64,000 nt of DNA from Phallusia mammillata (taxonomy: Eukaryota): assembly GCA_965637545.1 (NCBI GenBank), contig OZ281499.1, positions 10,850,001 to 10,914,000 of the forward strand, written 5' to 3'. This document shows, piece after piece, positions 1-52,528 of the stretch. The notes beneath the pieces are model-generated. The model was not told where the DNA came from. It searched no databases and worked only from the letters and a program-made list of their open reading frames with translations. The position numbers and the translations under genes are program-made. Position 1 is the stretch's first letter, and the number at the start of each line of letters is the position of its first letter.

Positions 1-1381
1 GTGTGACACGATTACGGAAAGACTATATCCGCTCAGAAAACAACATCCTAACTTGGAATGGAATGATTTGATACTAAAAGCTTACAATGAACGAATCTGC
101 CTCTCTGCCACTGGTTATCACAAGTGAGAAAAATATATATATTTCTTGTTTTTGCCTTCATAGGCGTAAGCGACGCATTATGCTTTTCAGGACACCTGGA
201 ATGTTTTCCACTTGGGACTCTGAAACAGGTATAGTCGAAGGCCGCCCTGCTTGCTTTTTTTCATACGGTGCAGCTGTGTCCGAAGTCGAAGTGGACTGCT
301 TGACCGGTGATCACGTGGTGCTTCAAACTGACATTGTGATGGACGTCGGAAGAAGTCTTAACCCTGCCATCGATATTGGACAGGTTTGCAAATTTGCAAA
401 GCTACAAAACTCTGATCTTCGTGTAACATGTCTTTGTTCTGTTGCAGATTGAAGGGGCGTTTGTTCAGGGTTACGGGTTGTTTACCATGGAGGAGCCCTT
501 GCACACCCCTGGTGGTCAGGTTATTACGTCAGGACCCGGTGTGTATAAGATTTCTGGTTTCGGGGATTGCCCGCGGAATTTCAATGTGCACCTTTTAAGA
601 AACTCTGATAATGACCGAGCAATATATTCGTCGAAGGTACAACTATTTAATTTAAAAACAACTTTTTTTGCTTCTTTACCGTGTATTTATCAGATCTAAT
701 CAGAGACTATAAATGAAGTATTTTTATCAATCGATTTTGGATTTGTAAATTGCATTTCAATTAATCTACAGCGATTGTATTTAATTTGTTGTACGGCCAG
801 ATATTTATAATTCGAAAACCTCTCAGCTTAAATGAATTTGTGATATTTGTCCATACAAGATAACCTTCGACCAAGACTATGCCAATATAAACTGGATATC
901 AACATTGCAATGATTAAGAAATCAATAACTGTTTTTTGTTTTATTGGTAAAAAGTATAATAAAACATAAAAAACATGCACGCAACATATCTTGAATTATT
1001 ATGTAACCAAGTTTATTTACCTTGCTTGTCGTTTAAATGTATTAATTGGAATACTGGTAGGCCCGTTATTTTCAGAGACGATGTTTTACAGGGTGTGGGA
1101 GAACCACCACTTTGTCTAGCGTCTTCGGTGTTTTTCGCAATCAAAGACGCGATTCAATTTGCTCGGAAGGAATCGGGATTGTTCGGATGGTTTCGACTCG
1201 ACTCCCCAGCAACGTCCGAATCAATCCGAATGGCATGTGGAGATTGTTTTACAAAACAGGTTTGTTTTCGCAGGTGGGGATGAGTCGTGTTAAAGTTTTA
1301 AAAATCCTTTTACTTCAGCATGAACATCACATTGACCCAAAAGTAGAAAAGGACCTGAAACCATGGAGCATTCGAGCCTGA
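1..1381 (+). CDS. XDH-like: 3' end of an XDH/AOX-family molybdo-flavoenzyme gene, class A copy 1 (5' part is outside the window)
   Basis: GT-AG exons 1-123, 191-383, 448-636, 1092-1259 and 1319-1381 splice in frame. They encode [17 protein letters not shown]...[32 protein letters not shown] (catalytic Glu1261 equivalent) and the C-terminus KPWSIRA*. Exon sequences match A3/A4 rather than B2/B5. Confidence 0.93.
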
Positions 1382-9900: not shown

Positions 9901-12420
9901 ATTATGTTGCCCCCAATCGCCTGTGGAACAACATTGATAAATTCCACATTGTGTTGAGTCAATACAACTTAAAGAACTTACTGCAACATTTCGGATTTGA
10001 TCCCCTGCAAACCAATGAAGCATATCGAGAAACGCGCGCATCCATTGTGTGCGAAACGTTTCAGTGGTTTGTATGATATCCTGAAATTGCTCCTTGATGC
10101 TTGTCAAAGTGCAAGCTGACCCGATAATCAGACCTGACAAAATATATCTAAATTGCAAATCGCATTGTTTAAAATGCATGCAACTTAGTTGAAATCTTGC
10201 TCGAATTGTGAAGGTTGTAATATATTATTGCCGTATAGGTGCAGTTTTAATTTGAACTTTTATGAACTCATGTCAAACCCTGACCTTCATCAGTGTTTGA
10301 TGTTGTAACAAGTTCCTTAAGACAAGTAGGAGAAATGATAACAGGAAACATTCGTCCTTTCACGTTGCATTCAACCCCGATCTCAGTGTTTCCATTTACC
10401 AACTGAGCTTCTGGGTAAATTGACTTCAGTTCAATCAGCTGATCTAGTGACGTAGGACGAAACCACGTGACCCGTTCCCCGACGAACTTTAGTGTTTGGT
10501 GCTGTTCAGATCTGCTTTTGATCTTAAATGCAATGGTAAACACATTTTTTATTATCATCGTTTGTTTGCGATTACCAACAACGGTAATTCTACCAAATGG
10601 TTAAGTAAACAACTATATTTTCCGTATCTATAGTCAATCAATACAAACCGTTTGGGCATACTGTTTAGCGTGAAACGAAATGATTCTATTTATGGAGCAA
10701 TAACGTGGTTTACTTTATTCCATACATAATAATGAAATAAAAAAGAAACCTACCATAAGTTGAGGGGGAAATATTATTTCTTGTGACGGATCGTATTTTC
10801 CAAAGCACACGTTCAAGGCCGAGTGAGGATCATCTACAGCATTTATTACTAGACATAACATGCAGAGAGTTAAACCCATTGTTGCTTTGTTATCCAATGC
10901 CGCAAAGCTTTTGTGGGTTCTACACTGAGTGGATTGAAAATACAAACACGGTTAACGGGATTTTCAAGCACGAGTTTCGATTATAATATTTCAAAACATC
11001 CACTGATAGATGTCCGCAAGCGAAACAGCTTGGTGTGTGACTAAAGTTTACCTGTTAATAACGTTTTCCAGATTTTGTTACGTGGGTTTATAAAGCTTTG
11101 AATATTTGCAAAATAAAGAACTATGAATACAACAAAATTTTTACAGTAATCGTAAATGTTAGTAATTAACAAAGACACGAGATATGTTCGTTAGTAAGAC
11201 TATTGAAATACCTCCATTCTGCTTGCAGCAATTCGCTCCCATAGGACAGCCAGAACCAGACTCCGAAAAAGTACTGAAGGCTGTATTAATAGGCATAAGA
11301 AATATTTTTCCCTGTATTACGTTCAATATATAACAAGTAACATTACTACATGATTTACCACTTAAAATCGGTCTGTATCCGGTGCACCGACAAAGATTTC
11401 CTTGCAAACATCCTTCGATATCCTCAGCTCTTGGCACTGATTTGTTACGTAACAATGCGTACATTGACATCACAATACCGGGAGTACAAAAACCACATTG
11501 AGATCCGTGAAATTTAGAAAGGCGCTCCTGCAAAAATGTGAAGAAATCTTAACATGTACAACAAAACGTTGTATTTGACTCAATTAAAAATACTGAACCT
11601 GCACTGCATGTAACTTGGTCTTGGTGCTGCCGATTCCCTCTACTGTAGTAACAGCACAACCATGTACTGAAACCACTGGAGCTAAACACGCGTTTGCCGA
11701 ATAATGTCTAACAAAGGTAGCAATAAAATGCTTTGTCATGTATCTATACAATATCTTATAATATTCACTGACATGATTTTGCTGTTGATGTGATCCCACT
11801 TCGAGATCATAACAGTGCATGCTCCACATCCTCCTTCCCCACATCCCAACTTGGATCCCGTAAGACGCACTGCAATAACAAACAGGAGATTTCATACGTT
11901 TGTTAAACAAATTATAATTTTGTTAATTTATGGCCCTCGAAAGTGCTGCAGACAGTTTATTGATGTCGTAGGAATCTGCAAGGCAAAGTTACACTAAATT
12001 GTAGTGGTAAAATCGTTCTCAGTAGGTTTCTGTTATTTATGTTAGTTGAAAACCTATGGTACATAAACTTACATTCTCGCCTGAGATAGGTCAAAAGCGT
12101 AGTTTCTGGGTCTGCATGATATTCCACAACCTGTTAATGCAGTAAACATCGATGACTAATCTTAAGTAACTCAAATGCAAGGTTCGCAAACTCACAGCGC
12201 ACGTTTCAAAATATTTAACTTACAAATGACAATTTACAGCGCACGTTTAAATATTTCAGACATCGACTGTTACAAGCTTCCACATACATAAAAACAACAA
12301 AAACATTCACATAGACATAACCTTTTCGCCATTAACATAAAATTCCAACACATCAGTGCTTTTCTTCGTCCATTGTGTTTTGTCGCTATCTACTTCGCCG
12401 TGGCAGTTAAGAATCACCAT
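3968..12420 (-). CDS. XDH-like: XDH/AOX-family molybdo-flavoenzyme, class B copy (about 30 coding exons, apparently intact)
   Basis: ATG at 12420 ([33 protein letters not shown]). 2Fe-2S motifs [10 protein letters not shown] and [17 protein letters not shown]; FAD domain [27 protein letters not shown]; Moco domain [44 protein letters not shown]; stop TGA at 3968-3970. No frameshift found by eye, provided the GA donor at 6795 is used. Confidence 0.92.
6625..6795 (-). other. Putative non-canonical GA-AG intron in B2
   Basis: Exon ends KYK (AAG) followed by GAAAGTAAC; the next exon begins VGF after tttgcacag. Retention hits an in-frame TAA, and the GT at +5 shifts the frame. Confidence 0.75.
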
Positions 12421-18858: not shown

Positions 18859-21800
18859 AACTCACAACAAGTATTTCATCTGCTACTCAACATATAGAGT
18901 AAAACAAATGAAAAACTGTTTGCATAATTTTTAAATAATGATGTTTGTAAAAGATTTATTGAAAGTTATTTGTATACTTTCTTATTCGTTCAGAAAACGT
19001 GCGTTGAAAATCATCGTTTGCAAGCGCATATGAATGCAAAAAAAAATTACTCACACAGTTCCAACATATTATCTCTGTATTGTTTAGACCCGATTGTTTA
19101 ATCTCGCACCAACCTTTTCTTGCGTCATGTTCAGAAATTGGGCGATTCGAGTCATCCAACTCTCAACGATCAACATTCCCTGTGGTGCACCAAAACCACG
19201 AAAAGCGTTGCTCGATGAAATATTGGTTTTGCAGATTTTACCGTGTATAAGAACGTTTGGGATTCTATCAAGTTGAAAGTGCCGATGTCAAAAGAAATAA
19301 AACTAGGATTTGCAATTTTTTACCGTCCTGGCGACTTACTTTTGGCTATTTTCATACATTAATGTAAAAAAGAATCTAAAATTTGTAGTTCATACTAATT
19401 TTTATTTATCTCTGGCAATCATAATTGTTGTTTTTTTACTTGTAACAATTGTCGCTGTGTATAACTGCCTTGCCCAGTACACCGCCAGAAAGATCAAGTG
19501 TGTTACCACCGTTGCCATACAGGTCCAGAATTAAAGCCACAAGTTTGCCGTCTTTCATAAACCCAACCTGTGAAGAAAGCAACGCATATTTCACAAGTGA
19601 ATCGTAATAAAAAACAACTAAACAAAATTCCTGAAGTACTTTATATCATATAGGCCAGTTTAGCTCTTACTTTTAATGGCTTGTAATGAAACGTGGCGTA
19701 CTTATATAATTCATATTTTTCCGGGGTCTATTCGTTGCCACATTGCAGCAAAGAGGTTTGTCTGACGTTATTAATTACTAAATTTAAAACTAGCCTTGAA
19801 CTTACCTTGTAATTGGCAAAAAACGGCTGGCGCCCTCCAGTGATAATCATGTCCTCTTTTCTGCTCAACATACATCTCACTGCTTTGCCACATCTTAAGT
19901 ATATTTGCAATGTTTATCTACCGGCATCGAGACGGCATCGTTTTGTTCAATAACCTACTTATGTGCCGCAACTGCAACAGGATTACTGACAACGAGAAAC
20001 CGAGTTTCCTTGCCTCCGAATCCTCCTCCCATCCTTTTCACTCTACTTACCACTTTGTTTGCTTCTACCCCAAGCAATGTAGCCGTCTGTGAGAAATCAC
20101 ACATAAATACCATTCATAACATTCAACATGAAATTCGTTACATTTAGCCAATCCCGTCATTATAATATTACACAATACCGTGCGTTGAAGCATAGATGGA
20201 TCTTGGGATGAACAGAACATCTCTATTTCTCCATCTTCGCCTTTCGGAACTGCGATGCACGCTTGTGTCTCGAGGTAGAAATGTTCTTGACCTCCTATTC
20301 TGTGAATGTATTGGCAAAACGTAAACATTCAGATCATCATCAGCTACCGATTTCATTTTACACCTAACCTGACTTCTCCCTCGATCACGTGATCGCACGT
20401 TGCCATGGCAGTGATTGCGTCTCCGTGAACTACATTCTTGGAGATGTCAAAGTAGGACTGATGATGCATAGCATCCTTTCAAAAAAAAAGAATTTTCAAA
20501 AAAATATATGCATCACTTTTCCAAACTATGTGTTACAAACAAGCATGTTTGTTTCAGGTTTAATATTTACTTCTATCGTGATGATTACAGGTGATATATC
20601 CTCGTAGTCGATTTTCACCAACTGAGCAGCTCTTTGAGCGTGAGCCTGTGTGTCAGCTACAACTGCTCCAATCACTTGACCGAAACACGTTACCTTAGGT
20701 AACAAATAGAATGTTTCTGTTTAAACCACACATTTTAGCTGATTTTGCATGTCAGCCATTTTAAGTTTACCTTGCTGGTTGCAAACACCTCGCACAGTTC
20801 GCCTGCAATCGGTATTTCGTTGGTTCCTGGCACGTCACGATGGTCTACATACGTCACAAATCCTTCGCATGCCACTGCTTTGCTGATGTCGACGTTTTTG
20901 ATGTAAGCATGTGGCCGGATACTTGTAACCAAGCACAAGTACAACTCATCTGCAACCATTATCAAATATTGCAAGTTCGAATTGACCCGGTAGTGGAAAA
21001 TGTGTTAAGGGCGAGGTTTACCAATAAAACATTAGAAAACGCTGTCAATGTGTGACACGATTTTTTTGTTTTAGCATAATTTGCATTGTTTTCTGATAAA
21101 AAGCGAGACTTCATAAACCAACCTGAAAATGTTGGCATGTCATCAACATATACAGCTTCACCAGTTGTGTGCTTGTCGCCAGATGCATGTTGCATTGGTC
21201 GACCAACCATGTCATCATGCGGTTGCCCATCGGTGGTCTACAAAACACCAGGAATTGCACAGATTTGTTTTTAGTGGAAAATATTTGTATTTTTAGTGTT
21301 TTTAGTATTTTAGTAAACGTAGGATCACAGATGTGGGCGTAAAAATTGTTTTAGCTGATTTGGAAAATACCATCACGTTTGTTAAACAAATGCTCTGTAC
21401 AAATAACTTCATTAAAAATAAGAGAACAAATACTTTATGTTTATTTGTTAAAAACCGTGATCGTTTCTTTTTAGTGTACGTGATCAGAGAGATTCGTAGT
21501 TGCTCATTACTAAAGTATGTTTTTATTTCACTCACATCTTGCCAAGTCCTTGTGCTCATTGGAATATGAATTGCATCCGTCGGTTTAAACGTTGTGAGAT
21601 TTTGAAGCTTCAAATCATCTTCGAGCTTAAAATATACAAGATACTCGCAAAATGTCCGGAAGATTAGAGAGAATAAAAACGAAATCCTTTAAAGAGTGTG
21701 TTGGAAACATTACGGAAATCACTTACAGTCGTCAGCCCCTTCTCGACTAGATTGCCCCGGACGCACAGAAAGAACTTAAAGAAAAAGCTTGCTGCAAGAG

Positions 21801-33084: not shown

Positions 33085-36000
33085 ATGGTAAGAACGGAAG
33101 TGAGCACTGATTGGCAGGCTATGTCACGTGATGTGCTAATGTTCTACGTAAATGGGAAAAAGGTTTGTTAAAATTAAGTTTTTTCTTTTGTAACTCAATA
33201 ATACTAAACTAGATTGATGTTGAATAGTCAAATCAACAAGCATTGTAACTGCTTATGATTATTAGATCGTCGAGGAGTCACCTGATCCGGAAACGACTCT
33301 ATTGACGTATTTGCGAGTAAAATGTAAGTTACTGTTAGAAATTGGTATTTTAGTTGTTTACATTTTCAATTCTTAACGTTAAGGTGTTCATGTAATTGAC
33401 GGGTTGAGGTGTACTTTTAAAATCAGACTGTAAAAATGAGTCGTGTTAAAAACATGCAGTGCGTCTTACGGGATCAAAGTTGGGATGTGGGGAAGGAGGA
33501 TGTGGAGCTTGCACTGTTATGATCTCAAAGTGGGATCCCATCAACAACAAAATTGTGTGAGTAGGAATGATCGTTATGCATCCGTACAACAGCCAACATG
33601 TTATCTTTTCAACAGACATTTTTTGGCAAACGCGTGTTTAGCTCCAGTGGTTTCAGTGCATGGATGTGCTGTTACTACAGTAGAGGGAATTGGCAGCAAC
33701 AAGACCAAGTTGCATGCAGTGCAGGTATTGTATGAACGTCATTTTTTACGTAATAAGTCGCTTTGCAATTATGGTCAAAATTTCAGGAGCGCTTCGCCAA
33801 ATTTCATGGATCCCAATGTGGTTTTCTGCACCCCCGGTATTGTGATGTCAATGTACGCATTGTTACGAAACAAACCAGTTCCAAGTGTTGAAGATATCAA
33901 AGAGTGTTTGCAAGGAAATCTATGTCGATGCACTGGATACAGACCTATATTAAGTGGTATGTCTGAGAAAATGTCTGTCATGTTTAATGTACATATTTAC
34001 AAACACCCGTATGCTAAAAACCGTGTTGCCATGTCTGGAGAAAAACATCAGTAAATATCAGACGGTCAGCAAATTCGGTATTTTATGTTTCAGCTTTTAA
34101 TACATTTCTCGATTCAACGGCTGGATGCCCGATGGGAGCTAAATGCTGCAAAAACAAACCAATTCAAAATGGTAATGACTGTAGGCACAGATTGTGTACA
34201 AAGTACACTATTTGCTGCTCGTGTTTTATAGGCTTTCCAGAAACATCTGACACACATTTATTGAGAAATGATGATCCCCATGCATCCCAGTCAGTTTGTT
34301 TCAGCAAATATGACCCTACACAGGAAATCGTGTTTCCACCAGATCTGTTGGTATATTTTATAATTAAACTACGGGAGTTGTATTTTTGATTTGTTCCTCA
34401 TTGCAATATAGGGTGGGAAATAATCCCAATTAAGGTAATTTGCACCGATCAATCACTGTCTTTATTCCAGACCAGGCTCGTCGGGCTTGAATCAAACAAC
34501 TTCAGATGTCGGTTCAGTTCGGATAAACTAAGATTAACAGGTAAAACCATTCAAGAATTTTTTGATACACTGCACAGAGTTCGTAAAAAGCAAGGGCGAT
34601 AAACACAACAACTGAATAGCTCCTAATAGCGTTTGTGTCAGCTAATTTGAATAGTATAAATCCAAAAACAGACAGATTTGTACATGTGCGCTGCTTTTAT
34701 GGTAGTAGTAAATCATGTTTCAGTTACATCGTTTTTAACAAGTATCCGGAAATGAACTAGAAAATCACTTGGCGTGCTAAGAATAATCACCTGTTAGCAG
34801 TTGTCAACCTCTGTTATAATGTTATAAGTAGTGGTGCATATAATGCATTGTAATAAGTAGATAACTTTAAGCAGTTGTTACAAACTAAGCATTTTGTTCC
34901 ATCTATGTGCAAAATGTTTGTACTCGTTTTAATCATCTATTCGTCTGTTTCTTTGCAAACAGTGATTTACCGACCTTTTTACCATTGTTTATCTTCAGAT
35001 AGAATCCAAATCTGAAGACCCCAAAACACTAAAATTGGTCGGAGAACGCGTCACGTGGTTTCGACCAACGTCACTTCAACAGTTGGTCGAGTTGAAATCC
35101 ATTTACCCTGATGCTCAGTTGGTGAATGGAAACGCTGAAATCGGGGTGGAAGCAAATGTTCGGGGGCGATATTTCAAACATATTATTACTCCCATTGACG
35201 TGAAAGAGTTAAAAACAATATCTGCAGACGACAAAGGTAAACTCCAGAGCTTTATTGGTGGACATTGTAATTATTGTAAACCAGTATAAGGGCTTCACAG
35301 CCGTTTAACAGGTCTATGCACAGTTTTGGTTTCTAACAAGTAAACATGTCATTCTGCTTCATAACTTTCATTTTTGCTTCAGTTTTTATGAAAATAGTAA
35401 TCTTGAGCCCGCACTTTAAACAAACCCGCTCACCAATTACCGTTTAATTTGTACAGGAGTCGAAATTGGAGCATCATGTACGATCAGCAAAGTTAAAGAA
35501 GAACTTCAGAGCTTCATTGACTCTAAAAGGTTTGCAAAGTATCAAACACAATGTCTGGAATCTCTAGTTGAAATGATCTACTGGTTTGCTGGTGATCAAA
35601 TCCGAAACGTTGCGGTAAGACAATGCGATTTTATGTTTCAAAAAGTTTCATTCAATAATAAGAATATCCAAATAAATGCGTTACGCAGGTTACAAACAAG
35701 CAGTTCCACTACAGACTTCTCTGCCTAAACTTACTCAATTCTGATAAAATTCTGACATTCTTCTATTAAACGCAGGCGTTCGGAGGCAACATAATGACAG
35801 CAAGTCCCATCTCTGATCTCAATCCAATCCTCATGGCAAACGAAAGTATTGCTACATTCAGATTACATTCTCGTGCTAAAGATCGACAGGTTTTGATGGA
35901 TCAAAGTTTCTTCCCCAAATACAGGACGACATGTGCAGAGAGGGCGAAGTTCTTATTTCTGTTTTTCTTCCGTTTAACACCAAGGTAGTGCACCAAACAA

Positions 36001-39000
36001 AATAATACTAAGTGCAATGTTTTAAATTAGTTACAATTAGGACGAGTACATGAAAGCTTACAAGCAATCCAAACGACGGGAAGACGATATTGCTATCGTG
36101 AACTCAGCCATGCGTGTCGTCTTTCATCCTGGAACTTGCAAAGTGCTTAAATTTGTGGCCGCATTTGGTGGAATGGGTGCTACTTCAGTTATGCCGAAAA
36201 AGACCATGCAAAGCATAATTGGAAAGTAAGTGCCTTTCTTTGATATTGGTGTAAGTTGTGTCTTTTGCACATGTGCTTTTTATGTAGAGAATGGAATGAA
36301 ACACTGATGAAAGATGTTGTGATTTGGTTGCGAGAAGATCTTCCGTTGGCTCTGGATGCTCCAGGAGGAATGGTGAAATACAGAGAAGCTCTTGCAGCAA
36401 GTTTTTTCTTAAAATTCTTTCTGCATGTCCAGAGCAATCTCGTCGAGAAACGACTGATGACTGTAAGTGATTACCGCAATGTTTTTAATGAACACTTTAA
36501 ATATTTCACTTTATTCGTTGCAAAATTAACTATTTTTCCTCTTCAGAGCTTTTAATGTGTATTTTTCCGAACATTATTCGACTATGTTGTATATTTTAAG
36601 CCTACAGATGATTTGAAGCTTCAAAATTTCACAGCGTTTAAACCGACGGATGCAATTCACATTCCAATGAGCACAAGGACTTGACAAGATGTGAGTGAAA
36701 TAAAAACATACTTCAGTAATTAGCAACTACGTATCTCTTTGATCCCATACACTTCAAAATCAAACGGTTTGGTCTTTGGCAAATTAAAAACAATCACTGT
36801 TTTTAACAAAAAATAATCTTAAAATAAATTTTCTCTTATTTTTAACGAAGTTATTTGTACAGAGCATTTCTTTAAAAAACGTGATGATCTTTTTCTGGAT
36901 CAGCTAAAAATCTTTTACACCCACTTGAACATACATTTACTATAATTAAAAAAATGATTTACTCAACAAATGCTTTGAATTAAAAACTCAGTACAATTGC
37001 TTTTGTTTTGTAGACCACCGATGGGCAACCGCATGATGACATGGTTGGTCGACCAATCCAACATGTGTCTGGCTACAAGCATACAACTGGTGAAGCTGTA
37101 TATGTTGACGACATTTCAACATTTTCAGGTTGGTTTATAAAGCCTAGCATCAATCCGAAGTTGACCTGCAATATTTAAAGCTGTTTGCAGATGAGTTGTA
37201 CTTGTGCTTGGTTACAAGTACCCGACCACATGCTTACATTAAAAACGTCGACATCGGGAAAGCAATGGCGTGCAAAGGGTTTGTGACGTATGTAGACCAT
37301 CGTGATGTACCTGGTAGCAACGAATTGCCGATTGTAGGCGAACTGTGCGAGGTGTTTGCAACCAGGAAGGTAAACCTAAAATGGTAGACATGTAAAAAGT
37401 ATGATACGAGCAGAAAAGGTTTGTAACCTCAGGTTACGTGCATTGGACAAACCATTGGAGCAGTTGTAGCTGAATCCCAAGCACAAGCTCAAAGAGCTGC
37501 TCAGATAGTCCAAATCGACTACGAGGATATATCACCTGTTATTATCACGATTGAAGTAAAATTATCCTGAAACAAACATGCTTGTTTGTAACACATGTTT
37601 TGGAAAACTAATATTTTTTTTATATAATTCTTTGAAGGATGCTATGCATCATCAGTCCTACTTTGACATCTCCAAAAAAATAGTTCATGGTAACGCAATC
37701 ACTGCCATGGCAACGTGTGATCACGTGATCGAGGGAGAAGTCAGGTTAGGTGTAAAATGAAATCGGTAGCTGATGATGATTTGTACGTTTACGTTTTTGT
37801 CGATAAATTCACAGAATAGAAGGTCAAGAACATTTCTACCTGGAGACACAAGCGTGCATCGCAGTCCCGAAAACCGAAAAAGGAGAAATGGAAATGTTCT
37901 GTTCAACTCAAGATCCATCCCTGCTACAATGCACGGTATTGTGTTGCGTGTGTAATATCACTAGAAAGGTGGCGTTCTAACATACATCCATTTTAAATAA
38001 TCTATATCCTATTTACCAATTTACTAAACACATCATTTGATGTACACGTATGATTGTTTTTTTTTAACAAAAACGAAAATATCGTTTGTAACTGAGGTTG
38101 CAATACCTACAAGTTGACCTTTAGTGACCTGCGGTCATGACGCGGCCCAGCTGACAACGAGAATTTAAAGACCATTTATCGCGGCTGTCGAAAAAGTCAA
38201 GTTTATTTTTTTCATCTTTATGTTGATCAACAAAGTTTTGCTTGACATATACGAAATCGAAGCACGTTTATCGAGTTTTAATCACGCCCTAAACCTTCGG
38301 CAAAACTTGAAATGAGCGTGTAACTTAATAAAACGACATGGCATTGCTGCGCAAATACAGCTGATTTATAATCGCCGAAATGACTGTCTCGTAAAACGTC
38401 TGTCCGGACGTCAAGCTGAGCTATCCCGCTTTGCATAATTGCAAACCAGTGAGTTCGCCCTCTGGCCTTCTGTCTGACTGACAGTGTACACATATTATGG
38501 GCTGTAAGGGTAACCATTTGGTCGATTAGGGCAAAATTTTAAAAACTAAACACGTAACCTACTCTACTGCAAACGATTGTTAAAATTTCAGCATATTAGG
38601 GCTTGCATTTCTGGCATAAAACCAAAGCCGATTATTTCGGGGTTTAAGGGGTGAAAATGGGTGAATCCAATAAAAAGTTAGAAAATCCTTTAGAATACCT
38701 TACATTGCACCAACCAACAAACAATGAAACTGCTAGACTATGTACTTTAGCCAGTAGAGCCGTTTTAAAAGAAATATGTTCTGGGAGCCTTTGGATGGAC
38801 CACTAGGTTATTCGGGGCCAAACTTCAGTTGGATTAAATTTGAAATAATATCTAACAACTGTGTAAATTTGAATAAATTTAAATTCTTGACCAAACGCGT
38901 ATAGCAAACCAGCGTTAGACAGTAACGAGTACTTGGGGGTTTAATGGGTGAAAATGGGTAAATCCTATTAAAAGTTACAAAATTCGTTGAAATACCTTAC

Positions 39001-42000
39001 ATTGCACCAACCATTGACGCATGAAACTACTAGATTATGTACTTTAGTCAGTACGGCTATTTCAATATTTACGTTTGGGGGGTCTGTGAATGAACCACTG
39101 GGTATTTTGGGGTGAAACTTCAGTAGGATCAAATTTTGATTCATATCTAACATCTATGTAAATTTAAATAAATTTAAAGCATTCTTTTTTGACCAAACGC
39201 GTTTAACAAACCAGCGTTAGACAGAAAAAAAGAAAAAGAAAAAGACGAAAAAAAACGGACAAAAACAATATGCGTCCTCTGCATAAAAGGGGACCCATAA
39301 TACAGACGGGGTTGGCAAAATGTTTCAAGGAATTTCATGTTGAAATATTGATGTGTAATTTCTCACAGACGGCTACATTGCTTGGTGTAGAAGCAAACAA
39401 AGTGGTAAGTAGAGTGAAAAGGATGGGAGGAGCATTCGGAGGCAAGGAAACTCGGTTTCTCGTTGTCAGTAATCCTGTTGCAGTTGCGGCACATAAGTAG
39501 GTTATTAAAAAAAAGATGACATACCGATGCATTGATAAGATTAACATTACAAATCAACTCAAGATGTGGCAAAACAGTGAGATGTATGTTGAGCAGAAAG
39601 GAGGACATGATTATCACTGGAGGGCGCCAACCGCTTTTAGCCAAGTACAAGGTAAGTTCAAGGCTAGTCTTAAATTTAGACCATTAAAAAGTTTGAAAAT
39701 TTGGCCTCTTGAAATATATGAGTTGTTAGTCATCTTTTCATATTTACGAGCCAATACAGTGCACAAGGAGCTAAACTGGCTAACATGATATATAGTAGTT
39801 CAGAGATTTTGCTGTGTTTTATTACGATTCACTTGCATTTTTTTACAGGTTGGATTTATGAAAGACCGCAAACTTATGGCTTTAATTCTCGACCTGTATG
39901 GCAACGGTGGTAACACACTTGATGTTTCAGGATATATACTGGCCAAGGCAGTTTTACACAGCGACAATTGTTATAAGTAAAAAAATAATTATAATAAACA
40001 CAGTCAAAAATGCCTCAATTTACAGAAGGAATCTGTGTCATGAGATAGTTAAAAATTAGTATGAACTACAAATTTCACATTCCTTTTTGTATTAATGCAC
40101 GCAACTTGAAAGTAGCGGAAAGTTAGTCGCCAGAATGGTAATAAAAAAAATATGAGTTTTGGTTCTTTTGACATCTTTCTACTTTTTCTCAGTGACTTTG
40201 AAAATATAGACAAAACTGTAATTGAAATGTGATTTTGTTTTGTCGAGTGATTTTAAAAGTCAAGGCATCAAAGTAGTGTTTAATTGTTTTCAGTTGAGGG
40301 ATTTAAATATGTACAAGGAGGGAGACGTGACACATTTCAACCCAAAAATTGAATCATTTCAAGCCAAAAGATGCTGGGAAGAAGTAATTGAGAAATCAAA
40401 GATGGTGCAGAGAAAAAAAAAATGCGCAATTTAACAAACAAAGCAGGTCAGCTTGATCTGTAATATTGAAAGCAAATATAAGCTGAATAAGAAGTCAAGT
40501 CGTATACCTGCTTCAGGTAAAAACACTCAGTACTATATAACATGCGAGAAAAGTACATTGTGATATTAGATGGCGCAAAAAGGGCATTGCTTGTGTTCCG
40601 ACGAAATATGCAATAGGTTTCCCTTACAACTGGTGTCATGGTGGTGCATTAGTTCACGTTTACACTGACGGTTCGGTTTATCTATCACAAGGAGGAACTG
40701 AAATGGGACAAGGATTACATACTAAGATGTTGCAGGTAGTTTGAAAAATTAAACAGCATTTTCATAGTTACGATTATTATTTGTAAACGTTTTAACAATC
40801 GCTGTTTACCATTTAAAAAAATAACCACATAAGACACCACAACAGACTCCAGTTTGCTTACAAAACAGGTGGCGGGAAGGTGCCTTGGTGTTCCTTTATC
40901 GCGAATTCACATTTGTGAGACAAGTACAGCTACTGTTCCGAACACAAGATCGACAGCAGCAAGTTTCAGCACAGATCTTAACGGGATGGCAGTGAAAGTT
41001 AGTTTTTTTAGTGCCTGATTTTTGCACCAAATTCTCAAATCGACACTTTTATGTAAGTCAAAAAATTAAATACCCATCATTTTAGGATGCGTGTGACACG
41101 ATAAAGGAAAGACTAAATCCGCTGAGAAAACAAAATCCTAACTTGGAGTGGAACGATTTGATTACAAAAGCTTACAACGAACGAATCTGCCTCTCTGCCA
41201 CTGGTTATCACAAGTGAGAAAACTAAACTTAAATTTGACATAGTGACTAAAACATTTCGAAAAGAGCCAATCGTTAACATTCGTAATAGTCATTTTGCAA
41301 CAAGTTTGGTATATTTAGTAATATTCTTAAAACGGCATGTTGCGAATAATTCACAAAAAAATCCGTCGTAACAGAAACGGTTAGTTTGTACACAATATGT
41401 TTTATTGAGGACACCCGGAATGTTTTCCGCATGGGATGCTGAAACAGGTATAGTCGAAGGTCGTACTGCTTGCTATTTTTCGTACGGTGCAGCTGTGTCC
41501 GAAGTCGAGGTGGACTGCGCTTGACCGGTGATCACGTGGTCCTTCAAACTGATATTGTGATGGACGTCGGAAGAAGTATTAACCCTGCTATCGATATTGG
41601 ACAGGTTTGCAAAATGCCTTAGGTGAAGGTAGCGAAACCGTTACACATTTACAACTAACTTAATTGTAAAAAGCATGCATCCCGGAAAGGTATACCATTA
41701 TATATGTGGACGTATTTTGTCCACAGATATTACTTAGTTTGATATTCAAAACTGTATAGCACGATAAAGGAAAAATGAAACCAAAAAGCAATTTTATTAA
41801 ACTTGATGTGATAGGTCTTTGTTCTGTTGCAGATTGAAGGGGCTTTTGTTCAGGGTTATGGGTTGTTTACTATGGAGGAGCTCTTGCACACCCTTGGTGG
41901 TCAAGCCATTACGTCTGGACCCGGTGTGTATAAAATTCCTGGTTTCGGAGATTGTCCACGGAATTTCAATGTGCACCTTTTAAGAAACGCAGAGAATGAC

Positions 42001-42555
42001 AGAGCAATCTATTCATCTAAGGTAGAACGATTAAGTTTCTAAGCATTTTTTCCACGTAGGAACAATAGGCCAACAAAAGTATCTCATTTTGGGTGATATA
42101 TATATGTATATATATATATCTTTTGGCAAAAGTTGTGCAATTCTATTTGTATTTTTTTTTTAGTTTTATCAGAGAATTGTCGTTAATCAACAGATTTTAA
42201 TTATCTTGTTGCTCCCTTTTACTCAACGGTTGCATAACATTCAATTTTGTTTTTACATAGGCTATCGGAGAACCACCCCTTTTTCTGGCGTCTTCGGTGT
42301 TTTTCGCAATCAAAGACGCGATTCAATTTGCTCGGGAAGAATCGGGATTGCTCGGATGGTTTCGACTCGACTCCCCAGCAACTTCCGAATCAATCCGAAT
42401 GGCATATGGAGATTGTTTTACAAAACAGGTTTTTTGTTCATAGTCAACTTAAATTAAGTTGAACACTGACAAAACATTTTTTACTATTTTAGCATGAGCA
42501 ACACACTGACCCCAAAGTAGAGAAGGGCTTGAAATCTTGAAGCATTAGAGCATGA
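33085..42555 (+). pseudogene. XDH-like: XDH/AOX-family class A copy 4, pseudogene
   Basis: Collinear with A3 but with multiple lesions: +1 T at 33822-33825, -1 near 35940, TGG>TGA at 36682-36684, loss of the whole IPN...AFRGFG exon near 40175, -2 near 40420, +2 (gc) at 41519-41520, and TGG>TGA at 42538-42540. Confidence 0.9.
37960..39296 (+). mobile_element. Non-autonomous Helentron/HINE-like element in an A4 intron
   Basis: About 1.34 kb absent from the ~90-nt homologous A3 intron. Starts actagaaaggtggc, carries two ~290-bp internal tandem units (about 38620-38921 and 38935-39223), an A-rich simple stretch and a 3' hairpin gtcctct-N7-aggggac (39274-39294). No TIR or TSD seen. A second copy lies at 62806-64000. 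The superfamily assignment is inferred. Confidence 0.55.
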
Positions 42556-43829: not shown

Positions 43830-44182
43830 ATCTACAGTTATTTACGCACAAAGTAGGTCTGCGGTTATTGTTTTTTTCGCAACCTTAGATTAAATACTTT
43901 GTGAACTATTTAGGCAGCAAAGCAAAAGGTTTTGCATGGCTTTTGCAAAGATGTGAAAATGGTAGTGTATGACAAAAATGACTGGCATAGTACGCATACA
44001 TAGGTATTGACAAACGCGGTTTTATAACATGCGTACGCTTGTCAGACAACGATTTGGAGGTGGTATTTAAAGTTAATAATTAAGTTCGATGCCCAGAAAT
44101 GTTGTGTGCCGTATAACATGACGTTAAGTACTTTTGCCACAGTGAACGTTTCAACCACTAAATTTTGATATTGGTGGGGAAA

Positions 44183-47100
44183 ATGGTGATTCTTAACTGC
44201 AACGGCGATATAGATAGCGACAGAACACAATGGACGAAGAAAAGCACTGATGTGTTGGAATTTTATGTTAATGGCGAAAAGGTTCTATTGAATTGTTTTC
44301 TTTTTTGGCTCTTTCTGTGCTGTTGTATTGGTTGAATGTAAATGTTTTTTTAATGTTGTTTGCATGACAGTCCAAAAAAGTGCGCGAATCCGTACATTGC
44401 ATTATTTATCGCTGCTTACTGCATTACAGGTTGTGGAACATCATGCAGACCCAGAAACTACGCTTTTAACCTATCTCAGGCGTGAATGTAAGTTTACATC
44501 AGAAGTTTGAAGTTAACACAAATTACAAAATATTGTATTTATTGTTGAGAACATTTTAGCCACTACAATATAGTGTAACTGTGCCTCGTACGGTATCAAT
44601 AAATTGTAAAATTCTAACTGGTTTCACAAATGAATGAAATTCGCAGTTCGTTATTACAGTGCGTCTTACTGGATCAAAGTTAGGATGTGGGGAAGGAGGA
44701 TGTGGAGCTTGCACTGTTATGATCTCAAAGTGGGATCACATCAACAGCAAAATTGTGTAGGTATATATTATATGAGACCGTATGCTACACTAAATGAAGA
44801 TTCGTTTGTAACCTTCTAGACATTACTCGGCAAACGCGTGTTTAGCTCCAGTGGTTTCAGTGCATGGATGTGCTGTTACTACAGTAGAGGGAATTGGCAG
44901 CACCAAGACCAAGTTGCATGCAGTGCAGGTGAAACATTTCCTGGTAGAGTTAAAACAATCGTTGTAGCGCATGTTGATCAATGCTTATTGATTTTCTATA
45001 GGAGCGACTTTCTAAATTTCACGGATCTCAATGCGGTTTTTGCACCCCCGGCATTGTGATGTCAATGTATGCATTGTTACGTAATAAATCAGTGCCAAGT
45101 GCTGAAAATATCGAAGGATGTTTGCAAGGAAATCTATGCCGGTGCACCGGATACAGACCGATTTTAAGTGGTAAGTCTTGCAGTACTGTTGTCCGTTTTG
45201 AGTTGCACAAACAACCAAAAACATTTGGCCAAACGGCGAACATTTCCTAAAATTAATGCAAATTTATGTGTCCCGTTTTTGCTATTATTACAGCTTTCAG
45301 TACTTTTTCGGATTCTAGTTCCGGTTGTCCAATGGGGGATAAATGCTGCAAACAGAGTGGAGGTATTTCAACGGTCTTACTTACTTACATGCTTCACTAT
45401 TTTATTACGTACTCTTTGTGTAACAGAATACTGGGACACTACATAGCTGTTGTATGATTACTGGTGTATTTTTTACTTCACGTATAATGTAGAACCTACA
45501 AAAAAACTAGTATTAAAACTTTATTGGATAACAAAGCGACACTGAGTTTAACATCACGCATGTTGTCTTTAGTAATAAAAGCTAAAGATGATCCCCACTC
45601 GGTCTTGAACGTCTGCTTCGGAAAATACGATCCGTCACAAGAAATAATATTTCCCCCTCAACTTATGGTTGGTATCTTTTGTATTTCATCATTTTTTTAT
45701 GCAATAGAACAAACAATATTATTGTTCCACTAAAAACATTATCTCCTTTAACGGCGAAAACCGTGCCCAAACAGTTAGTTTTAATTTACTACGGATACGG
45801 ATAATATAGTTGCTTGCAGCAATACGTAACCATTAAGGAGAAATACCGTTGTTGGTAATGGAAACAAATTGTTATAATGTATCATATATGACAAAAAATG
45901 CATTGACAATTGCTTTGAAGATCAAAAGCAGATCTGAACAGCATCAAACTCTAAAGTTCGTCGGGGAACGGGTCACGTGGTTTCGTCCTACGTCACTAGA
46001 TCAGCTGATTGAACTGAAGTTAATTTACCCAGAAGCTCAGTTGGTAAATGGAAACACTGAGATCGGGGTTGAGTGCAACGTGAAAGGACGAATGTTTCCT
46101 GTTATCATTTCTCCTACTTGTCTCAAGGAACTTGTTACAATATCAAACACTGATAAAGGTCAGGGGTTGGCGTGAGTTTATAAAAGTTCGAATTAAAACT
46201 GCACATATACCCCCATAATACGTTACAACTCCAGCAAGATTTAAACGTATATATTTTATCAGGTTTGATTATCGGGTCAGCGTGCACTTTGACAAGCATC
46301 AAGGAGCAATTTCAGGATATCATACAAACCACTGAAACGTTTCGCACACAATGGATGCGCGCGTTTCTCGATATACTTCATTGGTTTGCTGGAGATCAAA
46401 TCCGAAATGTTGCGGTAAGTTCTTAAGTTATTTTTACTCAACACAATGCGAAATTTATAAACATTGTTCCACAGGCGATTGGAGGCAACATAATGACAGC
46501 AAGTCCCATCTCTGATCTCAATCCAATCCTCATGGCAAACGAAAGTATTGCTACATTCAGATTACATTCTCGTGCTAAAGATCGACAGGTTTTGATGGAT
46601 CAAAGTTTCTTCCCCAAATACAGGACGACATGTGCAGAGAAGGGCGAAGTTCTCATTTATGTTTATGTTCCATTTAATACAAAGGTAAAACCGAGTTGTG
46701 CAACTTAAAAGTTTATGCTGTTTTGGTTATACAATGCTGCCAAGTAGGACGAGTACATGAAAGCTTACAAGCAATCGAAACGTCGAGAAGACGATATTGC
46801 TATCGTGAATGCAGCCATGCGTGTCGTCTTTCATCCAGGAACTTGCAAAGTGCTCAAATTTGTTGCCGCATTTGGTGGAATGGCTGCTACGTCAGTTATG
46901 CCAGAAAAGACCATTCAAAATATGATTGGAAGGTGAAGCAACAACATAATAATTTTGAACATCTGATGACATTTGCAACTTCTAATTAACAGAGAGTGGA
47001 CGGAAGATTTGGTCCAAAACTACATGCAATGGATAAGGGAGGACTTTCCACTGAGTCTGGATGCTCCCGGAGGAATGGTGGAATACAGGGAAGCTCTTGC

Positions 47101-50100
47101 AGCAAGCTTTTTCTTCAAGTTCTTCCTACACGTAAAGAATTGTTTGATCGAACAAGGAATAATCGAGGTAACTTATTGTCTGAATATGTCATGTAAGATC
47201 ATAACATTCGTTTCGATGTCGAAAGGAAAATATCAAACCAGAAGAAATAAGTGCTATGGATGACTTTTTACAACACTACCAGTTTGGAACACAGACCTGG
47301 CAAGGGGTAAATATTAACCATTTTTTCGTACTTTTAGTTCGAGAGTAATATTTTTACTGAATATTAGACTCACTCGAATCAATCATTAGAAGATCTAGTT
47401 GGGCGACCAGTGAAACATGTATCTGGAGAAAAACACACCACTGGCGAAGCTGTTTTCATAGATGACATGCCAGTGTATAAAGGTAAGTAACATTATAATG
47501 CGAAATGTATACCGATGCAATTCGGTAAGTAGATTTTGGTGAGTAACCAAGTACATTTTTCTTCATCAAAATCAGCCCCAACATTACAAATTATGGAAAA
47601 TATTACTTGATGTCACAACAGCCTAAAATTTTACGTAAAATGAAAACACACGCAGTTTCGGCCTAAGCCTTGTCCTTGCATCATGTCAATTGTTAAGGGT
47701 TTGGGAATGTCAAAAAAATTGAAATAAATAAAAAAATACCCTGAGCAAAGTATCGACTATCAATATATTAAATAAAAACTTTTGATTTCCAGATGAGCTT
47801 TATCTATGTTTTGTAACGAGTACTCGAGCGCACGCCTACGTACGCAACGTTGACATCAGTAGAGCTATGACATCACCGGGTTTTGTGATGTACATCGATC
47901 ACCGTGACGTGCCGGGTTCGAACAATGTTAAAGTGATTGATGATGACGATCGAGTTTTTGCAGTGGACAAGGTGAAACTGAAGTTGGCAAAAAGATTACA
48001 CATTTAGAATGATAAATATCAGTAAGGCGACTCGGCTTTAGGCTATTTCACGAAAACCATTCTATGTGGTTTACTTGGAACTGTTTATTTAACCATTTTT
48101 AGAAAAAAAATTTGGTTCACTTATGTCTGTTTATCAAACCAAGCAAATACATTTACATGGTAAAATGTTTTAATTTTTATGGTTACTGTGTACTTTCACT
48201 AAAATAAACTTATGCTTATTGATTCAAATTTATGAAGATATTTAGTCATTCAACCGTATATCGCCTTTACAAAATTATCGGTACTGATGAGAAACAATAA
48301 TGAAACAATGACTCTGTATCCAAAGGCGTTATAGCAATATAAGATAGTAATATTTCTACTGCGCGGTCATCGCTAATACTCGCAAATGTTGCAGGTTACT
48401 TGTGTTGGACACACCATCGGTGCTATTATCGCTGACACTCAAGCACATGCGCAAAGAGCTGCTCAGTTGGTGCAAATTGAATACGAAGATATTTCACCTA
48501 TTATTGTCACGATTGAGGTAACTGAACACAAAAGCCAATATATGCAACTTCTCACCGGTGTAAGTTAAGGTTTAATCCTGAAATTTAAACTTATGTTTAA
48601 ATTTGAGCGGAAAAAGTTTTTTATGGTTTAACATGATCTTAAAAATATTAGGATGCGATTAAACAAAAATCTTTCTTGGATCCGAGCAAACAAATTATTC
48701 GTGGTGATCCCGACAAAGCAATGGAAGAATGCGATCACGTGATTGAAGGGGATGTCAGGTAAATTGACTGAAAATTTGTCAGCAGACGAATAAAAAACAC
48801 TTGAATCAATAAGCAGACTGTTAGACAAAGACTGAGGATTGTGAATGTGTCAAGATATTACTAAATTGTGTGTGTTTTTGCAGAACCGCTGGTCAGGAGC
48901 ACTTTTACATGGAAACGCAAGTGTGTCTTGCTGTTCCGAAACTAGAAGATGATGAAATGGAAATTTACTCTTCAAGTCAAGATCCAACTGCCTTGCAAAA
49001 TCAGGTTGGTTATTAAACAAATATTTTCATCCAGTTCCTACCTCAATTGATGTGTTTTTAGTCAGCTTTCAGCAATAACTTTCATTTGAATTAAATTTCC
49101 AAGTTACCTGCGGAAGGTTTTGTAACTTTCCTTAGGCAAACTTTCCTTAGGCAACCACTCCTTAATGGATTGGCACTCATCCACTTAACATTCTTGTAAT
49201 GTTTTCATCATATAACGCAACAGTTTGGCGTAATAAACGATAACTAGCATTTTTAGGTTGCAAGAACACTCGGTGTTCAGCGAAACAAGATTGTAAGCAG
49301 AACAAAAAGAATGGGAGGCGGATTCGGAGGCAAGGAAAGTCGATTTTGGTTGGTCAGTAATCCAGTGGCCTTAGCAGCACACAAGTAAATTGGCATTTTT
49401 TACCGATTTGTTTTTCATTAAAACTGTGACAAAATCTCGCAGAAAATCTACAACACACCAAACCCCAACTCTGTGTTAACCTTCTTGCATGATTGCTTTG
49501 TAGATGTCGTCGACCAGTCCGATGTATGCTTTCCCGGAGGGATGACATGATAATGACGGGAGGTCGACATCCATATTACGCCAAATACAAGGAAAGTAAC
49601 TACATGTGATGTTCGAGCAGGTGGCGTAAAAAAACAATATATTACCCTAAAGGCGAAATTTTGTTTGCGACAAATATTTGTCAGGTGTTGTACATTGCAA
49701 CTACATGGGAATCATCTGTGAATGCATTTATTTGCACAGGTTGGATTTATGAACGACGGAAAAGTGAAGGCTTTGAAGGCTGAGTTGTACAGCAATGCTG
49801 GTCACACTATCGACTATTCGATGGCAGTATTATCAGCGTCCACAATCCACATTGATAATTGTTACAGGTACACTTTTACATAACCAATATAAAGGTTTGG
49901 GTTGACATCCTTTGTTTAATATTTTGGCGCTACTTCATAGTATACCTAATCTATATGTTCGTGGGACCGCTTGCCGCACCAACATTGCATCCAGCACAGC
50001 TTTCAGGGGATTCGGCGGTCCGCAGTCGATGTTCATTACGGAATCTTGGATCACGAAAGTTGCTGAACATCTCGGGGTCATGCCAGAGAAGGTAAAATGG

Positions 50101-52528
50101 AGTGAAGCCGGTGTGACTTGCAGTTTTTAAACAGTTTACACCCAAATGGTATCTAGTTTGGTGCGGTTTATCAATTTACACGGTTAGATTTTTTTGCATT
50201 TAAGATTCGAGCGATAAACATGTACAAGGAAATGGGGGAATTTACACACTACGGTCAAATCCTCGATCCCTGTACAGCGAGACGATGTTGGGATGGCTGC
50301 ATCGAAAAATCAAATTTCCACAAAAGAAAAGAAGCGGTAGACTTTTACAACACAAAAAACAGGTGATATTGTCGACTGTGGTTTTAAGCCAAAGCTTTTT
50401 AACTTACCGATTCCAAATCACATTCACAACATTGTGATTGATAAACAATGTAATATAATTAGGAACACTATACACGGACTTGAAAAGTAATTTAATCATA
50501 AACATTACTGCCAAGGTAGTGGTGTATAAAGAATACATCGTTCAGACGTTTCAACCATCTCTGTTGTCATCATCAGTGTAGGTTGTCAATCAAGCTGTAG
50601 AACACGGTACTAAGGAAAATAAAGCACTAAGGAAAAAAAGGTAAAAGCCAGATGTGTAAAGTGACGTCACAGACGAGATTGTTGAAACGTCTGAACGATG
50701 TATTCTTTATACACCACTACCTTGGCAGTAATGTTTATGATTAAATGTAATATGAGCATAGAACTTTGTCTTTAGATGGAAGAAACGTGGAATATCCTGT
50801 GTTCCAACCAAATTTGCTATCGGATTCCCAGAGTTTCGCTGCCAGGCGGGGGCGCTCGTGAACGTTTTCACTGACGGTTCAGTTTCTTTAACGCACGGTG
50901 GGACCGAAATGGGCCAAGGATTGCACACAAAGATGATACAGGTTGGAATTTTTTTTATGGCACTTTGATCTTCAATTTTAGTTCTTTTCATGCCTGTTAC
51001 AAAAACGATTATTGTTTATTTTTAAATCAAGATCGCCGGTCGCTGCCTGAAGATTCCAGTTGATTTTATACACATCTCAGAAACAAGCACCAACACAGTT
51101 CCAAACACCATTGCAACAGTTGCCAGCATTAGTTCTGACATGAATGGAGGAGCTGTCAAGGTAATACTGGAAGTCGGCGTCTGTAAAATTCAATATTTTG
51201 CTTCAGAAATCTTAACATGAACGTTTATTGTAGGCAGCCTGTGACAAAATATCCAAACGACTTGCTCCATTAAGAAAACAACATCCAACTTTGAAATGGA
51301 AAGATTTGGTTTTGAAGGCATTTATGAATCGAATAAGCCTTTCTGCTACAGGATACTACAAGTAAAATTAACATGATGTTAACTAGGAAAGAGAAAAATT
51401 GGTTTCGCTGTGAAACTTGTAACATACATTGGCAAAATTTTTCCTTATCTCACAAATTACCCGACGACAATTATTGCAAAAATCACCTTGCTTTGCTTGA
51501 GGCTCTGTTCACAGGACAATTGATAAAACCTAAGTGACAAAAATATACAAACAAAGGTTTTGTTTTGTTTTGTTTATAAAAACGGTTATTTGCAGAGTTC
51601 CGAATATGCAGAACAAATGGGATTTAGCCAACGGTAAAATCGAAGGTCGAATAGCAAACTATTACACTTACGGTGCAGCTGTGTCCGAAGTCGAGGTGGA
51701 CTGCCTGACCGGTGATCACGTGGTGCTTCAAACTGATATTGTGATGGACGTCGGGAGAAGTCTTAACCCTGCTATCGATATTGGACAGGTCATCAGCTAG
51801 TTGCATTTTTTAATACAATAGCATTGCAATAAAACAAGGTTCAATTGAGCATTAGGTTTGATTTTTGCAGATTGAAGGTGGATTTGTTCAAGGTTACGGA
51901 ATGTTTACAATGGAGGAGCCCTTGCACACCCCTGGCGGTCATATTCTAACAGTTGGTCCGGGTGCTTACAAGATTCCCGGTTTCGGTGATTGCCCTCGCC
52001 AGTTTAATGTTCACTTGCTGCGTAATTCGGAGAACGACAAAGCTATTTATTCATCCAAGGTTCATAAACACATTTGCACATTTTATTTGAAACTCTTCTG
52101 ACATTGGCTTTTAAAGGGAATTGGGGAACCGCCGTTCTTTTTGTCCGCTTCCGTGCTTTTTGCTATTAAGTCGGCGATCGGAAGTGCACGAAATGATTCG
52201 GGGATATTTGGACCATTCCGAATGGACGCTCCAGCTACCGCTGAACGCATTCGAATCGCATGTGGAGACAAATTTGTTAAACAGGTAAACGTAGAACATC
52301 AAATAACATTAACTTTTGGTTTGGTCTACCGTGGTAAAAAAAATCGGACAAAAGATTTTTTCGGCTGTGTTAATCTGTTCATTTGTAGTGTTACTGTTTC
52401 AGTAAACCCGAATTCTTACTTTTGATAAATTATGAAAAATATGAACTTGTTTTGGGTGCATTCAGCATAAATATCATTCCGACGAAAATGAAGAAAAGAA
52501 ATTGACTCCTTGGTCGGTTACAGCTTGA
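44183..52528 (+). CDS. XDH-like: XDH/AOX-family molybdo-flavoenzyme, class B copy 5 (30 coding exons, apparently intact)
   Basis: ATG at 44183 ([33 protein letters not shown]). Thirty exons were traced, with Fe-S, FAD and Moco motifs as in B2, ending TPWSVTA* at 52526-52528. Requires the GA donor at 49592. Confidence 0.92.
49592..49739 (+). other. Putative non-canonical GA-AG intron in B5
   Basis: TAC AAG|gaaagtaac ... tttgcacag|GTT GGA TTT. The intron is 148 nt, so retention frameshifts. Class A genes have AAG|gtaagt at the same position. Confidence 0.78.
50457..50746. mobile_element. Penelope-like-derived insertion with a perfect 66-bp inverted repeat, in a B5 intron
   Basis: 50490-50555 and 50681-50746 are exact reverse complements. 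The flanking direct repeat is aatgtaatat (50447-50456 and 50744-50753). The minus strand carries CTGATGA..GAAACGTC. The insertion is absent from the homologous B2 intron (about 5850-5980). Confidence 0.6.

Follow-up and report, generated by a model that had tools for sequence, protein, structure and literature searches.

The DNA analysed here (the window) is a stretch of 64,000 nt from Phallusia mammillata, and all positions are counted from its first letter. It holds a cluster of xanthine-dehydrogenase/aldehyde-oxidase-like genes that follow one another in mirror order, B and A on the minus strand and then A and B on the plus strand, which suggests an inverted segmental duplication of an A-B pair. 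The following genes were recognised:

2-1262, plus strand: tail of a further XDH-like paralogue, at the left edge of the window
4209-12420, minus strand: B_minus, the sister class B gene, with 29 exons as in B_plus and no indels
about 25089-16457, minus strand: A_minus, class A gene
about 33163-42431, plus strand: A_plus, class A gene
44183-52284, plus strand: B_plus, class B XDH-like gene (B5 of the preliminary description), with 29 coding exons and 1329 open codons

The models of B_plus and B_minus were built from homology combined with a splice-site search. Exon lengths are identical in the two genes, each contains 1329 open codons, and the coding sequences are 94.6% identical at the nucleotide level and 94.1% at the amino acid level. 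In the two exons for which both pairs were compared, amino acid identity is ∼85% for the A pair versus 94% for the B pair, the A pair thus looking more diverged. In each class B gene 27 of the 28 introns are of the GT-AG type; the sole exception is intron 20, which is GA-AG in both.

As the criterion for family membership we used the domain order 2Fe-2S, FAD-binding, a/b hammerhead and Moco-binding 1 and 2. The exon translations of B_plus matched, in this order, the Pfam families Fer2_2, FAD_binding_5, CO_deh_flav_C, Ald_Xan_dh_C, MoCoBD_1 and MoCoBD_2, every score exceeding the curated cut-off, and B_plus accordingly has the domain order of the xanthine dehydrogenase/aldehyde oxidase family (molybdo-flavoenzymes). 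It is also collinear by tblastn with a 1345-aa XDH (residues 44-1332), and the PDB matches of the peptides from exons 20 and 21 were to XDH and AOX. The xanthine-specific pocket of these enzymes is made up of Glu802, Arg880 and Glu1261 (bovine numbering). B_plus keeps Glu802 (in GGKES) and Glu1261 (in GIGEPP), with Arg880 replaced, so that the full xanthine-specific pocket is absent: in a gapless alignment the position equivalent to bovine XDH Arg880 (49836-49838, exon 21) is occupied by Ala (GCG). The equivalent residue is Lys in B_minus and in both A genes, and Arg or Lys in the outgroups. By this alignment, Ala is a derived active-site change specific to the copy without RNA contigs (see below). 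Because of the altered residue the substrate of the enzyme is uncertain.

The features around intron 20 and its counterparts in the other genes are:

49504-49591, plus strand: exon 20, 88 nt, aligning to bovine XDH 821-847, acceptor TTGCTTTGTAG/
49589-49599, plus strand: donor site of B_plus intron 20, AAG/GAAAGTAA, against the U1 consensus CAG/GTAAGTAT
49592-49739, plus strand: intron 20 of B_plus, 148 nt, phase 0, GA-AG
49596-49597, plus strand: GT at +5/+6 of the GA donor, a possible mis-cleavage site
49686-49739, plus strand: 3' end of intron 20 (54 nt), with 53/54 positions the same in the two B copies
49740-49867, plus strand: exon 21, 128 nt, VGFMNDGKV...NCY, aligning to bovine XDH 848-889 and to Pfam MoCoBD_1 146-187
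6625-6795, minus strand: intron 20 of B_minus, 171 nt, GAAAGTAACT...CACAG
19568-19805, minus strand: homologous intron of A_minus, GTAAGT...CACAG, canonical
39652-39848, plus strand: homologous intron of A_plus, GTAAGT...TACAG, canonical

Exon 20 of B_plus closes with the codons GGT CGA CAT CCA TAT TAC GCC AAA TAC AAG (last base 49591) and is followed directly by GAAAGT (49592-49597), the GA occupying 49592-49593. The intron ends in ...TTTGCACAG, with the AG at 49738-49739, and exon 21 begins with GTT GGA TTT (VGF) at 49740. These letters agree exactly with the GA donor at 49592, the 148-nt intron and the VGF start reported in the preliminary description; the GA had also been called conserved there, and the second class B copy in the window does share GAAAGTAACT. 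The peptides of exons 20 and 21 align without gaps to bovine XDH (821-847 and 848-889) and to MoCoBD_1 (to 115 and from 146). Therefore, a K/V junction, in which AAG is joined to GTT, is required.

The donor AAG/GAAAGTAA is identical in B_plus and B_minus, as is the surrounding region from at least −15 to +10. It carries AG at −2/−1 and A at +3, and the remainder fits the U1/U6 consensus: with +1/+2 set aside, 7 of 9 positions agree with the U1 consensus, a value tied for best among the 28 donors (median 5), and the donor equals that of intron 14, AAG/GTAAGTAA save at +2. At the other end of the intron, the 53/54 identity over the last 54 nt is the highest among the 28 introns of the B pair (the next being 51 and 48), while the middle of the intron is only ∼80% alike between the copies, with indels. 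Such a conserved 3' block is suggestive, and only suggestive, of selected branch-site or enhancer signals. An Rfam search of 49300-50000 on both strands, which included this block, returned no match; it is thus not a known small RNA.

Introns of the U12 type have the donor /RTATCCTT and the branch site TCCTTAAC near the 3' end. Non-GT-AG termini occur among these minor-spliceosome introns too, but class B intron 20 lacks their motifs, since the donor AAG/GAAAGTAA is not /RTATCCTT and nothing resembling the branch site TCCTTAAC occurs in the last 54 nt. Editing of the +2 A to inosine was likewise rejected, for the edited donor would read GG, not GT. The same mRNA would result if the boundaries were shifted by −1 (GG..CA), −2 (AG..AC) or +1 (AA..GG), none of which is canonical. 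RNA does not tell these placements apart, and GA-AG was chosen among them on homology, because the homologous intron of the A genes is GT-AG.

Both class A copies have AAG/GTAAGT at the homologous site, in agreement with the normal GT ascribed to them earlier. Three related loci in public assemblies were also compared. The intron was reached in one of them, the distant relative L001, which has AAG/GTAGCA at the homologous position; L002 ends with its contig and L003 is broken by a retroelement. The GT of the class A copies and of L001 implies that GT is ancestral and that T was replaced by A at +2 in the B lineage. The ancestral donor would have been a perfect consensus, AAG/GTAAGT, of the kind still present in the class A paralogues, and the +2 change would have arisen ahead of the split between B_plus and B_minus (dS about 0.15-0.17). 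It was probably tolerated because the remaining U1-pairing positions, and those pairing with U6 at +4 to +6, stayed optimal. With the predicted cut at the G of GA, AAG is followed directly by GTT in the mRNA and the protein reads ...AKYK/VGFM....

Other outcomes at this site damage the protein. As had been noted from the sequence, retention of the intron in B_plus shifts the frame, and a frame-keeping use of the +5 GT needs a cryptic AG and deletes VGFMNDGKV. With the intron retained, a stop follows after six codons (KESNYM, stop); the cryptic AG lies at 49763-49764. A cut at the +5 GT by itself adds 4 nt, and translation then ends 15 codons further on. When GT/GC-AG pairs at B_plus intron 20 were searched exhaustively, one frame-keeping candidate emerged that the preliminary description had missed: a poor GC donor at 49580 (TAC/GCCAAA), use of which deletes AKYK. 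None of the pairs gives an intact conserved protein.

In order to follow the intron in transcripts, we aligned to positions 47000-52500, at 90% likeness, the contigs of a DNA run (X2) and of X8, X9 and X16, three putative RNA runs that each belong to a different study. All are public runs of the same organism. The label 'RNA?' attached to the three runs is a guess; we treated them as cDNA on the ground that many introns are exactly missing from their contigs. All three runs gave spliced contigs, which run exon after exon with continuous record coordinates. In record 14 of X9, position 868 corresponds to 49384 (the end of exon 19) and position 1083 to 49939, with exactly 88+128 nt between them, the first two letters at 49939 (AG) being ambiguous with the end of exon 21. 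In record 12 of X8, the 695 nt between exons 15 and 22 are the exact sum of exons 16-21. The depth arithmetic agrees: in X8, X9 and X16 the depth of the bin 49576-49759 equals the contig depth multiplied by 36/184, and these 36 nt are made up of exon 20 (16 nt) and exon 21 (20 nt) with no intron, whereas use of the +5 donor would predict 40 nt.

Compared with B_plus, the contigs show 5-8% differences. Of 40 such places listed, 36 have the letter of B_minus, and the per-exon difference counts equal those between B_plus and B_minus within two, exactly so in 7 of the 10 listed exon pieces. The transcripts therefore come from B_minus. The joint 49591>49740 does not figure among the joint rows listed; it is the record coordinates and depth arithmetic together that show that intron 20 is removed exactly from B_minus transcripts, and hence that the GA donor of this gene, identical to that of B_plus, is used accurately in vivo. 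A retrocopy is an unlikely source of the spliced contigs, as the assemblies are small and transcriptome-sized and no exon-exon joints are listed in the DNA run X2.

Class B intron 20 is thus probably a genuine U2-type GA-AG intron whose +2 T>A change predates the duplication of the B genes. Its splicing is observed in B_minus. We infer the same for B_plus because the donor is identical, the last 54 nt are nearly so and the exons downstream are under purifying selection. The earlier proposal that the GA donor is functional accordingly stands on the exact removal seen in B_minus in the three putative RNA runs; for B5 itself, which is absent from the listed RNA contigs, it holds by extension.

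Among the contig pieces listed for X8, X9 and X16 over the region of exons 20 and 21 none is specific to B_plus, all carrying B_minus letters, and the best RNA run holds 0.08 of the B_plus 31-mers, exons making up ∼40% of the stretch searched. In the material sampled, B_plus is probably expressed weakly or not at all. The preliminary description had named lack of B5 expression as grounds for abandoning its proposal, and this objection is not cleared: the contigs have the letters of B_minus, and the share of B5 words is at most 0.08 in any of the RNA runs. Two further searches were negative: one for homologous proteins with the 71-aa junction peptide of B_plus (39-124 aa lengths) gave no candidate, and the ORFs beside intron 20 (53 aa in B_plus, 131 aa in B_minus), sought for independent DNA contigs, were not on record.

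B_plus could on these grounds be a silent, recently disabled duplicate, the GA intron working in B_minus and being irrelevant in an unexpressed B_plus. Besides the lack of B_plus-specific exonic contigs in the three RNA runs, this reading draws on the Ala that B_plus alone has at the Arg880-equivalent, on the number of derived changes at strongly conserved sites (five in B_plus versus one in B_minus) and on the end of B_plus/B_minus similarity ∼70 nt upstream of the ATG, which means that the promoters differ. The coding sequence tells against it. B_plus has 1329 codons free of stops and frameshifts and 27 intact canonical splice sites, and none of the marks of a pseudogene (frame disruptions, lost splice sites, dN/dS near 1) was found. 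Between the two B genes dS is 0.15-0.17 and dN/dS 0.16-0.19. A dN/dS of 0.148 was obtained for exons 21-29, which comprise the 470 codons after intron 20, and this low value supports a working junction, because these codons would otherwise be free of selection. When the 79 amino acid differences between the copies were polarised with the A genes, L001 and six other XDHs, 28 derived changes fell on B_plus and 32 on B_minus; B_plus has therefore not been decaying since the duplication, as long neutral decay would have left far more changes on it. The five derived changes of B_plus at strongly conserved sites are all conservative (Y>F, M>I, V>I), and the sampled RNA runs may miss the tissue or stage in which B_plus is expressed. 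B_plus has evolved under purifying selection, and we regard a disabled duplicate as unlikely. The statement that B5 shows no other lesion is to be narrowed correspondingly: its 29 exons contain no frame-breaking lesion, but the Ala at the Arg880-equivalent is found in B5 only.

It had further been proposed that the donor possibly acts as a low-efficiency splicing control on enzyme level. GA would then be kept as a deliberately weak site that throttles output, part of the transcripts being retained or cut at +5 and degraded. In the order of non-canonical donors GA stands low (GC>TT>AT>GA>GG>CT), and cleavage at +5 is described for donors of this kind (PMC6280755); here it would end in a frameshift and an early stop; the 53/54 conservation of the last 54 nt, the best of the 28 introns, could also reflect selected splicing signals. 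However, the assembled B_minus form is correctly spliced in all three runs, albeit assembled contigs drop minor forms and give no isoform ratios. Other introns of the B pair are well conserved too (51/54, 48/54), and a neutral +2 change that the otherwise optimal donor tolerates fits the data equally well. We therefore hold such a throttle to be quite doubtful.

It is very improbable that a canonical pair is really used at intron 20, either the GC donor at 49580 (loss of AKYK) or the +5 GT with the AG at 49763-49764 (loss of VGFMNDGKV). Both pairs preserve the reading frame, but the lengths of the B_minus transcripts fit the K/V junction only (216 nt, not 204 or 195), the residues that would be lost sit in the conserved MoCoBD_1 core, gapless against the XDH structures, and GCCAAA is a very poor donor. 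Although GA is only one base away from a consensus donor, an assembly or sequencing error, or a rare allele concealing a true GT, is scarcely credible, the strongest argument against error being that the same A stands at the same site in two paralogues whose exons differ at ∼5% of bases and whose introns differ far more; the independent DNA run X2 also spans the GA donor with uniform depth and no difference among the rows listed, a check that is supportive only.

GA-AG introns are already known, and class B intron 20 is a further example of them rather than a new mechanism. According to Brackenridge et al. 2003, as cited in PMC7072748, PMC5714493 and PMC6280755, they occur in vertebrate FGFR1-3, and in the accounts given by these citing papers the human FGFR introns are used efficiently. 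The FGFR1-3 introns, as described there, resemble class B intron 20 in being of the U2 type, with a GA 5' end, a donor otherwise near consensus and efficient use in an animal. However, the same accounts present the FGFR site as an alternative donor, reportedly dependent on a canonical donor six nucleotides upstream. Class B intron 20 has no GT within 12 nt upstream, and its GA is the sole donor giving functional protein; the site is therefore constitutive, not alternative.

GA and GG donors have also been described in the copepod Eurytemora affinis (PMC5714493) and GA-AG introns in Oikopleura dioica (PMC7072748), a tunicate, as is the host of the class B genes. The published GA donors require AG immediately upstream of the cut and carry A at +3 (PMC5714493; PMC7072748), as in the AAG/GAA found here, and in both species the 3' end is an ordinary AG. 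In Eurytemora and Oikopleura, however, GA donors are common (∼10-12% of introns in the sampled copepod genes) and outnumber GC-AG introns, which implies an altered recognition system, whereas the class B genes have GA in 1 of 28 introns each and every mappable homologous donor of the A genes is GT. A curated census of Ciona introns contains GT-AG, GC-AG and AT-AC only (PMC2760879). Outside these two species GA donors are rare; a human survey, in the form in which it is cited in PMC5714493, counted 14 of them among 222,263 introns. In human cells GA is fourth among non-canonical donors, these donors can be spliced at +5, and reporter assays indicate that they need high U1 complementarity or nearby enhancers (PMC6280755). 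Human +2T donor variants (PMC12805630; PMC6280755) likewise combine a functional +2 change with high U1 complementarity elsewhere, but they are recent, mostly only partially functional and studied as disease alleles, whereas the +2 change of class B intron 20 is fixed and was kept through a gene duplication.

A broader reading would be that ascidian spliceosomes tolerate GA beyond what the Ciona census records, as part of a tunicate-wide relaxation at +2 that was later exploited massively in larvaceans, with the weak donor and the 54-nt block selected as a throttle. We offer this as speculation, to which we attach little probability. Class B intron 20 gives a small hint of GA donors in ascidians, set against a Ciona census restricted to GT-AG, GC-AG and AT-AC. 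It is also a clean natural case: in a perfect consensus donor the T at +2 was replaced by A, and the change has survived for long (dS about 0.15) and through a duplication, which is useful as a calibration point for reading +2 splice variants. Where gene predictors and splice-aware mappers accept only GT or GC donors, both class B models will be broken or frameshifted at intron 20, and annotation of the XDH-like cluster therefore needs a manual GA-AG junction.

Several further observations concern the class B genes outside intron 20. Upstream of the start codons the similarity between the two copies extends over 44112-44183 (plus strand) and 12502-12420 (minus strand). It includes a conserved acceptor-like TTTTGCCACAG (44132-44142), 41 nt before the B_plus start codon, which may be the acceptor of a 5'UTR intron or of a spliced leader; the different regions beyond could explain different expression of the two B copies.

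At the opposite end, the last mapped exon of both genes closes with FVKQ followed by GTAAAT or GTGAAT (52285 onward on the plus strand, below 4209 on the minus strand), so that one more short 3' exon should exist; this terminal exon, following FVKQ/GT, was not located in the B_plus and B_minus models. A B_minus transcript contig extends 728 nt past FVKQ/GT, with no 90% match to B_plus.

Some deeper RNA contigs (depth up to 970), at 51600-51783 and 48288-49023 on the plus strand, are confined to the best conserved portions of the exons and show unusual long joints, from 48499 to 48882 and from 48922 to 51655. They probably derive from a more highly expressed paralogue matched at 90% likeness.

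Finally, a very high-copy repeat lies at intron 23 of B_plus (50312-50863, plus strand), where the depth of the DNA run reaches 170,000-330,000 compared with ∼500 elsewhere and where the repeat carries many rearranged joints. Intron 23 is 413 nt long in B_plus and 136 nt in B_minus, a difference that points to a repeat insertion specific to B_plus.
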